Positions 44,377 to 47,139 of a stretch of 64,000 nucleotides of DNA are shown here, piece by piece. Position 1 is the stretch's first letter. Each line of letters begins with the position of its first letter. Origin of the DNA: Macrostomum lignano (lineage: Eukaryota). The notes beneath the pieces were generated by a model. It was not told where the DNA came from and did no database searches. It worked only from the letters and a program-made list of their open reading frames with translations. The position numbers were made by a program, and so were the translations under genes. The stretch spans positions 1-64,000 of the forward strand of contig NIVC01002934.1 of NCBI GenBank assembly GCA_002269645.1, read 5' to 3'.

Positions 44377-44625
44377 TCACGGACCAGCCGTCACACAGAG
44401 CAGCTCTATGCGCTGTCCCGTGTCGCTCAGCTCCTCTGCTACCTCGGCCGTGGAATTGCTGCTGGTTTCTGGCGTCGGATCCGCTGGGACTGTCCGAGCA
44501 CCCTGGCCGGTGTACACCGGACAGTAGGTGTCCGGCGGGCAGGTGCACAACACTTGGCCGCCTGTTCGTCTGCCCTGTTTGTTCAGCGACTCCCCGTAGC
44601 AGGCCTGGGCCGCGTCGCAGGGGGG
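44377..44625 (-). CDS. Argos/giant-lens-like secreted Cys-rich protein, exon 4/4 (module 3)
   Basis: Acceptor GCCCGCAG|CCC, phase 0; PPCDAAQAC...VLCTCPPDTYCP...IELLC; TGA. Confidence 0.75.
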   Translation of the reverse strand, partial: PPCDAAQACYGESLNKQGRRTGGQVLCTCPPDTYCPVYTGQGARTVPADPTPETSSNSTAEVAEELSDTGQRIELLCVTAGP

Positions 44626-44639
44626 CTGCGGGCACAAAG

Positions 44640-44815
44640 TTGGGATCTGAACTGGGGGATCGGATTGGGGATCTGGTTTGGGGATCTAAATTGGGGATCT
44701 GAATTGGAAACCTGAATTGGGGATCTGAATTGGGGATCTGAATTGGGGACCTGGATTGGGGATCCGAAATTGGGGATCTGAATTTGGGATCTGAATAGAG
44801 GATCTGGATTCGGGA
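44640..44815. repeat. 12-bp minisatellite (GGGGATCTGAAT) in intron 3 of the Argos-like gene
   Basis: About 14 degenerate copies. Confidence 0.85.
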
Positions 44816-44968
44816 TTAACGAGCGTAAGGTTGTTTGGTTTTGAAAACTTTGGAATTCAGATTGCAAGCTCTTCATTGGAAATGCAAATTCAGATTGGGA
44901 TTAAGGAAATGATTTGACCGAATTGGAACTACAAATTTAGAACCAGGGATCAGTCCTCATCAGCTCAC

Positions 44969-45225
44969 CATCCTGCCGCAGGCGAACTCCACAATCTGGT
45001 TGCGCAGCCTCTCTCCCATCTCCAGCGGCTCGGCGTAGCGAAATCTCCGAATGCTGGCCGGCCCGGTCTCGGCCGCGCAGCGGCACCGGGGCGCCTCGTG
45101 CAGGTCGATCCACCAGCCCGTCTGGCGCAGCGCGAAGGCGCCACCGCCGCTGGTCGGGCAGAACGGGGCGCCGGGCCGGAAAATCGGAGCGCAGAACTGC
45201 AGCTGAATTTCACTGTCTCGGATGT
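44969..45225 (-). CDS. Argos-like protein, exon 3/4 (end of module 1 and module 2)
   Basis: Acceptor ACCCGCAG|AC, phase 1; QFCAP...PFC...PRCRC...VEFACGRM; phase-0 donor ATG|GTGAGC. Confidence 0.78.
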
Positions 45226-45244
45226 CTGCGGGTTGGCGTTGAGC

Positions 45245-45800
45245 TGCCTGCCTTGCTGCCTGCCTGCCTGCCTGCCTGCCTGCCTGCCTGCCTGCCTGCC
45301 TGCCTGCCTGTCTGTCTGTCTGCCTGCCTGTCTGCCTTCCTGCCTGCCTGCCTGCCTGCCTGCCTGCCTGCCTGCCTGCCTGCCTGCCTGCCTGCCTGCC
45401 TGCCTGCCTGCCTGCCTGCCTGCCTGCCTGCCTGCCTGCCTGCCTGCCTGCCTGCCTGCCTGCCTGCCTGCCTGCCTGCCTGCCTGCCTGCCTGCCTGCC
45501 TGCCTGCCTGCCTGCCTGCCTGCCTGCCTGCCTGCCTGCCTGCCTGCCTGCCTGACTGCCTGTCTGTCTGTCTGTCTGTCTGTCTGTCTGTCTGTCTGTC
45601 TGTCTGTCTTAGTGTCTGTCTGTCTGTCTGTCTTAGTGTCTGTCTGTCTGTCTGTCTGTCTGTCTGTCTGTCTGTGTGTCTGTCTGTCTGTCTGTCTGTC
45701 TGTCTGTCTGTCTGTCTGTCTGTCTGTCTGTCTGTGTGTCTGTCTGTCTGTCTGTCTGTGTGTCTGTCTGTCTGTCTGTCTGTCTGTCTGTCTGTCTGTC
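45245..45800. repeat. Compound (CCTG)n-(TCTG)n microsatellite forming almost all of intron 2 of the Argos-like gene
   Basis: Direct reading. Confidence 0.97.
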
Positions 45801-45804
45801 TCAC

Positions 45805-45997
45805 CCTCAGATCCCAGCCAGGTCAGTGTGATGGATTTGTCGGTGGTTATCCAGCTCCAGTCGCAGTTGACCTCGTGCTGGCAGCTGCACCGTCTCTCCC
45901 TGTACACCCGGTCGGAGACGCCCAGACTGACGGCCGTCGGGGAGTCCCAAAATCCGCCGCGCTCCAGGTATGCGCAGGGGCACCGCATACCGCTCGG
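45805..45997 (-). CDS. Argos-like protein, exon 2/4 (module 1)
   Basis: Acceptor AACCGCAG|CCG, phase 0; MRCPC...RERRCSCQHEVNC; phase-1 donor G|GTGAGA. Confidence 0.75.
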
Positions 45998-46021
45998 CTG
46001 CGGTTGGAGCAAGGCAATAAC

Positions 46022-47050
46022 TGACACCGCATAGAACAGATGACCACAGCATGACACCCAATAGAACCCATGACCACAATATGACACCCGATGGGACCCA
46101 TGACCATAGCATGACACCCAATAGAACCCATGACCACAGCATGACACCGCATAGAACAGATGACCACAGCATGACACCCAATAGAACCCATGACCACAAT
46201 ATGACACCCGATAGAACCCATGACCACAGTATGACACCCAATAGAACCCATGACCACAGCATGACACCGCATAGAACAGATGACCACAGCATGACACCCG
46301 AAAGAACCCATGACCATAGCATGACACCCGATAGAACCCATGACCATAGCATGACACCCGATAGAACCCATGACCATAGCATGACATCCAATAGAACCCA
46401 TGACCACAATATGACACCCGATAGAACCCATGACCACAGTATGACACCCAATAGAACCCATGACCACAGCATGACACCGCATAGAACAGATGACCACAGC
46501 ATGACACCCGATAGAACCCATGACCACAGCATGACACCCGATAGAACCCATGACCATAGCATGACATCCAATAGAACCCATGACCACAGCATGACACCCG
46601 ATAGAACCCATGACCACAATATGACACCCGATAGAACCCATGACCACAATATGACACCCGATAGAACCCATGACCACAATATGACACCCGATAGAACCCA
46701 TGACCACAGCATGACACCAGATAGAACCCATGACCACAATATGACACCCGATGGAACCCATGACCATAGCATGACACCCGATAGAACCCATGACCATAGC
46801 ATGACACCCGATAGAACCCATGACCACAATATGACACCCGATGGAACCCATGACCATAGCCTGACACCCGATAGAACCCATGACCATAGCATGACACCCG
46901 ATAGAACCCATGACCACAATATGACACCCGATGGAACCCATGACCATAGCCTGACACCCGATAGAACCCATGACCATAGCATGACACCCGATAGAACCCA
47001 TGACCACAATATGACACCCGATAGAACCCATGACCACAGCATGACGCCCG
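46022..47050. repeat. 30-bp minisatellite forming almost all of intron 1 of the Argos-like gene (ATGACACCCGATAGAACCCATGACCACAGC)
   Basis: About 34 copies. Confidence 0.97.
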
Positions 47051-47061
47051 ATGGAACTTAC

Positions 47062-47139
47062 GTCAGTAAAAGCTGCAGCGGCGACTGCGACAGAAGCGGC
47101 CAGCCTCAACAGGTAGATGAAGGGTGCAGTCTGACTCAT
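47062..47139 (-). CDS. Argos-like protein, exon 1/4 (signal peptide)
   Basis: MSQTAPFIYLLRLAASVAVAAAAFTD; phase-0 donor GAC|GTAAGT. Confidence 0.72.

Follow-up and report, generated by a model that had tools for sequence, protein, structure and literature searches.

DUF5731 as a probable flatworm branch of the Argos-like proteins: analysis of a four-exon gene of Macrostomum lignano

Whether flatworms possess relatives of Argos (giant-lens), the Drosophila protein that binds epidermal growth factor (EGF) ligands, and whether such relatives could act on EGF receptor (EGFR) signalling, is a question raised by a four-exon gene of Macrostomum lignano. The gene lies on the minus strand of contig NIVC01002934.1 (assembly GCA_002269645.1) at positions 44377-47139 of the window, that is, the whole stretch of 64,000 nucleotides analysed here, whose coordinates are the same as those of the record. 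The initial annotation had read it as a cryptic gene for an Argos-like secreted protein, a possible decoy for EGF ligands outside arthropods. Our comparisons of sequence profiles, predicted structures, and gene structures make it highly likely that the Pfam family of this protein, DUF5731, is homologous to Argos and forms a diverged branch of the superfamily of two-finger (2FTX) proteins that contains Argos (giant-lens) and the Argos-like proteins of protostomes. Capture of an EGF-family ligand by the flatworm protein is proposed more tentatively, by analogy.

The gene model was rebuilt exactly as it had been drawn, with four exons joined through GT-AG sites in phases 0, 1, 0, and its translation was identical to the earlier one. 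The coding sequence of 777 nt encodes 258 amino acids (aa), and all introns have the form GT...cag (donors gtaagt, gtgaga, and gtgagc). The 258-aa protein (P0001) is the same as the NCBI entry 'hypothetical protein BOX15_Mlig013187g1 [Macrostomum lignano]' (100% identity, 100% coverage). Thus, the gene was already annotated in GenBank and is not cryptic. Its hydrophobic N-terminus is encoded by an exon of its own, and the N-termini of the orthologues are also hydrophobic on inspection of their sequences; the exon 1 segment is presumed to be a signal peptide. The rest of the protein was divided into three domains with bounds at residues ~27-108 (domain 1), ~109-176 (domain 2), and ~177-258 (domain 3).

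The 16 cysteines claimed initially, in groups of six, four, and six with three CxC motifs, were borne out by their positions: 32, 34, 63, 65, 71, and 102 in domain 1, 113, 138, 140, and 173 in domain 2, and 179, 185, 203, 205, 211, and 253 in domain 3. Exon 2 codes for the N-terminal part of domain 1, with its first five cysteines and a conserved YLERGG motif, exon 3 for the end of domain 1 (C102) and the whole of domain 2, and exon 4 for domain 3. The spacing in P0001 is C-x1-C-x28-C-x1-C-x5-C-x30-C-x10-C-x24-C-x1-C-x32-C-x5-C-x5-C-x17-C-x1-C-x5-C-x41-C, and that in an Argos chain (P0038) is C-x5-C-x14-C-x1-C-x5-C-x21-C-x8-C-x24-C-x1-C-x26-C-x7-C-x5-C-x20-C-x1-C-x5-C-x26-C. The two proteins share the CxC motifs at cysteines 3-4, 8-9, and 13-14 and matching C-x5-C spacings, and their cysteines were aligned with one another by hhalign (see below), so the Argos-like layout agrees with the real 16-cysteine chain. 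They also have the motifs RxCxC-x5-C, (Q/K)(F/M)C(A/Q)P, xFAC, and LC(T/Q)CP-x4-CP in common. The Argos motifs cited in the initial annotation (KMCQP, LFAC, and LCQCP-x4-CP), together with the wider first cysteine pair, were all found in the actual chain of Drosophila Argos (PF11581; structures 3C9A and 3CGU).

There were also differences between the two proteins. The first two cysteines form CxC in P0001 but C-x5-C in Argos, and the flatworm protein lacks both the long disordered N-terminal region and the domain 1 insert of Argos. In domain 3, the C211-C253 loop has 41 residues in P0001, compared with 25-26 in Neodermata and Argos. It contains an acidic, Ser/Thr/Pro-rich insert (residues ~217-247, window positions 44410-44500) with an N233-S-T sequon; the paralogue Mlig014663 shares this insert, which is lacking in Neodermata and Argos.

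P0001 matched Pfam DUF5731 (PF19002) with 139.1 bits (E = 9.5e-41), well above the gathering score of 27.1 bits. The match spans residues 91-200 and profile positions 1-108 of 108, and most of it falls on exon 3. A Pfam match to CART (E = 0.096) was dismissed as noise from the cysteine-rich sequence. An exhaustive phmmer search with P0001 over 1.84 billion representative proteins returned 17 proteins. Across exhaustive HMMER searches, a word-indexed profile search, and cluster look-ups, all named relatives were flatworm proteins, except for one spider record (P0008). No Argos-like protein of another phylum appeared in the phmmer search of 1.84 billion proteins or in the word-indexed profile search. 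The members comprise two Macrostomum paralogues (Mlig014663g1, 40% identical, and Mlig014039g1), trematode proteins (Opisthorchis, Clonorchis, Paragonimus, Fasciola, Calicophoron, Schistosoma, Trichobilharzia, and Heterobilharzia), cestode proteins (Mesocestoides, Hymenolepis, Rodentolepis, and Sparganum), and one from a monogenean (Cichlidogyrus). The spider record (GFS93483.1, Trichonephila clavipes, 954 aa, partial) consists of 14 tandem copies of a ~67-aa unit whose core (ERCEIKWIATDQSLALWVGS) resembles residues 68-96 of P0001 (NCDWSWITTDKSITLTWLGS); the record may reflect amplification of an Argos-like exon, or else contamination.

All full-length DUF5731 members share 14 invariant cysteines, each of which is present in P0001. 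The two additional ones, C32 and C63, were both found in the Macrostomum proteins and in a Logan-assembly sequence (P0010), and both were missing in all trematodes, cestodes, and the monogenean. Since the two residues are present or absent together across the family, the pattern suggests that C32 pairs with C63, and the distribution points to an early loss, in the common ancestor of Neodermata, of one of the disulfides of domain 1. Argos has counterparts of both residues. Considering that Argos also has 16 cysteines and the neodermatan members 14, Macrostomum keeps the ancestral 16-cysteine state, which explains why a plain sequence search leads to Argos from its paralogue only.

When P0001 was taken on its own, the results weighed against the proposed kinship with Argos. 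The initial annotation had suggested a HMMER comparison of the joined protein with Pfam Argos (PF11581); no match was obtained at E <= 10, and phmmer against PDB sequences likewise gave no match at E <= 10. P0001 scored 1.3 bits against a hidden Markov model (HMM) of 21 arthropod giant-lens proteins, single-sequence hhalign gave P = 0.036, and the AlphaFold2 (AF2) model built from 17 sequences was unreliable, with a predicted local distance difference test (pLDDT) of 34.7. As judged from the sequences, the link between P0001 and Argos is a transitive one, through the DUF5731 family. A profile of the flatworm alignment A1 retrieved nothing among PDB sequences, phmmer with the Hymenolepis protein P0009 showed no Argos link, and the identity between the flatworm family and Argos is only 16-17%. 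The lack of significant similarity of P0001 alone, the empty A1 search of PDB, and the low identity are in line with an alternative in which DUF5731 is unrelated to Argos and the resemblance arose by chance convergence of cysteine-rich composition.

Other members of the family gave direct matches. In phmmer against PDB, the Macrostomum paralogue P0019 had a sole match, 3c9a_A 'Protein giant-lens' (E = 0.011), in which its residues 73-242 aligned to residues 40-193 with the cysteines in register. The same paralogue scored 18.6 bits against the Argos-family HMM (per-sequence P = 4.5e-8). A cestode protein (P0035) matched Pfam Argos colinearly, residues 83-204 corresponding to profile positions 4-125 of 129 (E = 3.4e-4, 21.1 bits). 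This was the only one of 17 flatworm members with a PF11581 match, and the match was sub-threshold; true Argos proteins score 205-247 bits. Since the best member (21.1 bits) remained below the gathering score of 25 bits, the flatworm protein is a remote relative and not an Argos family member by the curated test.

The family as a whole was then compared with an arthropod Argos alignment, which had been gathered from the Argos fragment in the P0019 match. With the 17-sequence DUF5731 alignment, hhalign gave a probability of 95.5% (E = 1.4e-8, score 64.1) over 183 columns. The aligned region extends from residue 54 of P0001 to its last cysteine, through domains 1-3, and every cysteine is aligned. 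The part encoded by exon 3 aligns with Argos KMCQPVHKLPVC...HCRCP...LFAC, and that encoded by exon 4 aligns with Argos C-x5-C...LCQCPKGHRCP...GYC. The controls scored much lower, at 18.4 (0.5%) for the reversed Argos profile and at most 21.5 (1.4%) for 40 column-shuffled ones. Both the gap between these scores and the real one and the colinearity over three domains, including all aligned cysteines, argue against convergence.

Structure prediction and overlay on Argos, which had been put forward as a check, succeeded with an orthologue, whereas the model of P0001 itself was too poor for this purpose. Foldseek with the P0001 model ranked the Argos chain 3cgu_B first among 350,542 chains, at E = 0.43. 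For the Opisthorchis viverrini orthologue, AF2 with 23 sequences reached a pLDDT of 81.4 and a predicted template modelling score (pTM) of 0.72, with 12 strands arranged as 4+4+4; Argos consists of three beta-sheet domains of four strands each (PMC12514838). When this model was used as the query, the four Argos chains took ranks 1-4 among the 350,542 chains (E = 9e-8 to 6e-7, probability 1.00), with alignments of ~214 columns corresponding to the whole chain, and the fifth match had E = 0.06. Argos was thus the sole significant structural match in a set that includes many cysteine-rich folds, which is difficult to explain by composition. P0001 had no Pfam UPAR_LY6 match, and the best structure of the Ly6/uPAR type in Foldseek was human C4.4A (6iom_B, E = 0.94). 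The Ly6/uPAR and TGF-beta-receptor ectodomains are likewise built of disulfide-stapled beta fingers, but each domain of the present protein has two fingers instead of three. In uPAR, three such domains engulf an EGF-like module (Klein et al. 2008, as cited in PMC12514838).

Gene structure provided independent agreement. The O. viverrini orthologue spans 16.7 kb and has four exons, with three introns at homologous codons in phases 0, 1, 0; intron 2 lies in the same codon as in Macrostomum (the D of D-[IM]-R-D). Endogenous Argos-like genes of gastropods also have four exons and phases 0, 1, 0. In these genes, exon 1 carries the signal, domain 1 runs from exon 2 into the beginning of exon 3, which also encodes domain 2, and exon 4 encodes domain 3, whereas the phases of the related conotoxin genes are 0, 2, 0 (PMC12514838). 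As far as the published description shows, the gastropod genes (Pomacea canaliculata, Conus betulinus, and C. ventricosus) have the same four exons, phases, and domain-to-exon layout as those of Macrostomum and Opisthorchis. Both groups are spiralian, and their proteins consist of three two-finger domains without long flexible inserts; the gastropod proteins are secreted, as is presumed for those of flatworms. Set against the alignment controls, the structural search, and the gene structure, chance convergence is hardly credible, and we prefer homology of DUF5731 with the Argos-like proteins. The claim of an Argos/giant-lens-like protein therefore stands at the family level, through hhalign, P0019, Foldseek, the 16-cysteine framework, and gene structure, but not at the level of P0001 itself, which leaves PF11581 unmatched.

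The claim that such a protein would be new outside arthropods could be kept only for the flatworm branch. In October 2025, Khilji et al. had already described ~1800 proteins of protostomes, each built of two or three two-finger (2FTX) domains, from molluscs, nematodes (C. elegans M6.4), tardigrades, arthropods, and the annelid Capitella (PMC12514838). Neither a flatworm protein nor any Pfam or DUF family is mentioned in their main text (PMC12514838). Since that survey lists no flatworms, the flatworm branch appears too diverged for the published PSI-BLAST. In the searched literature we found nothing on DUF5731, the gene Mlig013187, or giant-lens in Platyhelminthes, and no report of a secreted EGFR antagonist from flatworms; Argos is missing from a survey of the EGFR pathway in flatworms (PMC4914847). 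What is new, as far as the evidence goes, is the placement of the flatworm-only family DUF5731 as the platyhelminth branch of the Argos-like superfamily. This brings Platyhelminthes into the superfamily, among them trematodes and cestodes of medical importance, identifies Macrostomum as a holder of the ancestral 16-cysteine form, and gives the uncharacterised DUF5731 a concrete, testable functional hypothesis.

What the protein might do in the worm was considered by analogy with Drosophila Argos. The Macrostomum gene, which is of the expressed type, would code for a secreted protein of ~230 mature residues with three consecutive two-finger beta domains. The hydrophobic exon 1 peptide would direct secretion, and eight disulfides, in the 6+4+6 cysteine layout, would staple the three four-strand domains. 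These domains may close as a clamp on the EGF-like domain of the worm's secreted EGF/neuregulin-type EGFR ligand, by which the ligand would be kept from its receptor and EGFR signalling would be damped. Eight EGFRs are known from M. lignano (PMC4914847); the worm thus has a pathway on which the protein could act, and ligands of the EGF type are to be expected. EGFR signalling governs stem-cell behaviour, differentiation, and regeneration in flatworms (PMC4914847). We put this whole explanation, with capture of an EGF-family ligand at its centre, just short of an even chance.

Several findings explain this caution. Although the O. viverrini model retrieved the four Argos chains, its TM-scores to Argos are low globally (0.30-0.38, root-mean-square deviation 12 A), indicating that the domains match but that their mutual orientation differs or is unreliably predicted; the domain arrangement, and hence the clamp, is therefore putative. 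Among 61 aligned non-cysteine positions that are at least 85% conserved in arthropod Argos, five have the same majority residue in flatworms and 11 have a similar one, so that most conserved Argos surface residues are not shared. At the conserved basic stretch of Argos domain 3, CQRKEPCRLFTVRK, the flatworm proteins have neutral or acidic residues. EGF-ligand binding has been shown for Argos only, a function has been shown for no Argos-like protein besides Drosophila Argos, and knockouts of C. elegans M6.4 have no phenotype (PMC12514838). Since the flatworm proteins keep the scaffold of Argos but not its surface, EGF-ligand capture is plausible only and is regarded as putative.

A kept scaffold with an altered surface would also suit a protein of the same ancestry and fold that holds another partner, such as a cystine-rich growth-factor module, a receptor ectodomain, or matrix, in which case EGF capture would be an arthropod specialisation. 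The conserved motifs specific to the flatworm family (WLERGG, TFKLIGTDDMRDYEFQ, and AFELRQxGTWL) do not occur in Argos, two- and three-finger folds bind many kinds of targets (PMC12514838), and the remaining Argos-like proteins have no known function. However, the sole functionally characterised member binds EGF ligands with the same three-domain architecture. The three domains and their disulfides have been kept across more than four flatworm classes (14 invariant cysteines), whereas the two-domain conotoxins lost domain 3. Moreover, the flatworm ligands have diverged too, and a diverged surface is therefore expected either way. We consider a different partner a real possibility, somewhat below an even chance. 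The wider proposal that DUF5731 proteins are the extracellular EGFR-ligand antagonists of flatworms, from Macrostomum to schistosomes, liver flukes, and tapeworms, is in our view doubtful.

Considering that some Argos-like proteins are venom components, the flatworm protein could also be a toxin-like or external effector in defence, prey capture, reproduction, or host interaction and not an endogenous regulator of signalling. A centipede scoloptoxin has been noted as Argos-like, and venom proteins with two or three 2FTX domains are found in centipedes (kappa-scoloptoxin Ssd1b), turrids, and cone snails (PMC12514838). By their descriptions, Ssd1b, C. elegans M6.4, and other protostome Argos-like proteins are secreted and have three 2FTX domains in which the cysteines follow the pattern of Argos, the centipede venom members having been weaponised and M6.4 having no known phenotype (PMC12514838). 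The presence of at least two diverged paralogues, 40% identical, in M. lignano also counts in favour of this reading. However, the family evolves slowly, and in parasitic flatworms the gene is close to single-copy; between trematode families, the orthologues show 61-72% identity. Venom families typically have hypervariable loops between the cysteines, which are absent here, and the gene phases are 0, 1, 0 as in the endogenous snail genes, not 0, 2, 0 as in the toxin genes. An effector role is therefore improbable, and an endogenous Argos-like protein remains our preferred reading.

If ligand capture is true, such a ligand sink would determine how far EGF/neuregulin signals act on the neoblasts or germinative cells, the stem cells under their control, offering a handle on signal range in regeneration. 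In parasites, host EGF-family ligands might also be captured, and the protein would then be a candidate secreted parasite factor.

The features of the locus and of the rest of the window are listed in Table 1.

Table 1. Exons and introns of the DUF5731 gene, with flanking repeats and other coding features of the window
Feature	Position	Strand	Description
Exon 1	47139-47062	minus	78 nt; ATG and residues 1-26 (MSQTAPFIYLLRLAASVAVAAAAFTD), hydrophobic; phase 0 end GAC/gtaagt
Intron 1	45998-47061	minus	1064 nt; nearly all 30-nt minisatellite, 34.5 copies, 46022-47057
Exon 2	45997-45805	minus	193 nt; residues 27-90 and first base of codon 91; phase 1 end GAGG/gtgaga
Intron 2	45226-45804	minus	579 nt; (CTGC)n/(CTGT)n microsatellite, plus-strand spelling
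Exon 3	45225-44969	minus	257 nt; residues 91-176; phase 0 end ATG/gtgagc
Intron 3	44626-44968	minus	343 nt; 13-nt tandem array 44642-44816, 13 copies
Exon 4	44625-44377	minus	249 nt including TGA; residues 177-258
22-mer array	42833-44334		~66 copies; right after the stop codon
21-mer array	47682-51243		~170 copies; 0.5 kb upstream of ATG
Scramblase gene	~52650-57139	minus	PF03803; annotated upstream neighbour
WSC-domain gene	~34918-35863	minus	PF01822; small protein, annotated downstream neighbour
Cadherin ORF	10055-11176	plus	Pfam Cadherin E = 8.8e-28
Cadherin ORF	11805-13676	plus	Pfam Cadherin E = 2e-56

Tandem repeats make up most of the introns and flank the gene on both sides. The 30-nt repeat of intron 1 has no stops in all three minus-strand frames. 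Repeats without stops in several frames give rise to spurious open reading frames (ORFs) of 400-1200 aa, for example one at 45847-47139 that continues from exon 1. Two M. lignano models of the same or sister loci, P0002 (A0A1I8FV53) and P0003, were not used, as they are chimeric or frameshifted, with true stretches alternating with out-of-frame translation; they carry the misleading names 'H(+)-exporting diphosphatase' and 'Translation initiation factor IF-2-like'.

A second genomic copy was found on NIVC01002743.1 at 9339-12084. Its exons and the 258-aa protein are identical to those described above, while the first intron is shorter by 1 nt and the second by 16 nt. Downstream of this copy lies an aminotransferase gene, in contrast to the WSC-domain gene at the NIVC01002934.1 locus. 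Since the downstream neighbours differ, the second copy looks like a recent duplicate and not the same locus. Elsewhere in the window, the two long plus-strand ORFs with Cadherin matches lie in a GC-rich stretch (57-63% GC) and probably belong, as exons, to a single protocadherin or FAT-like gene.

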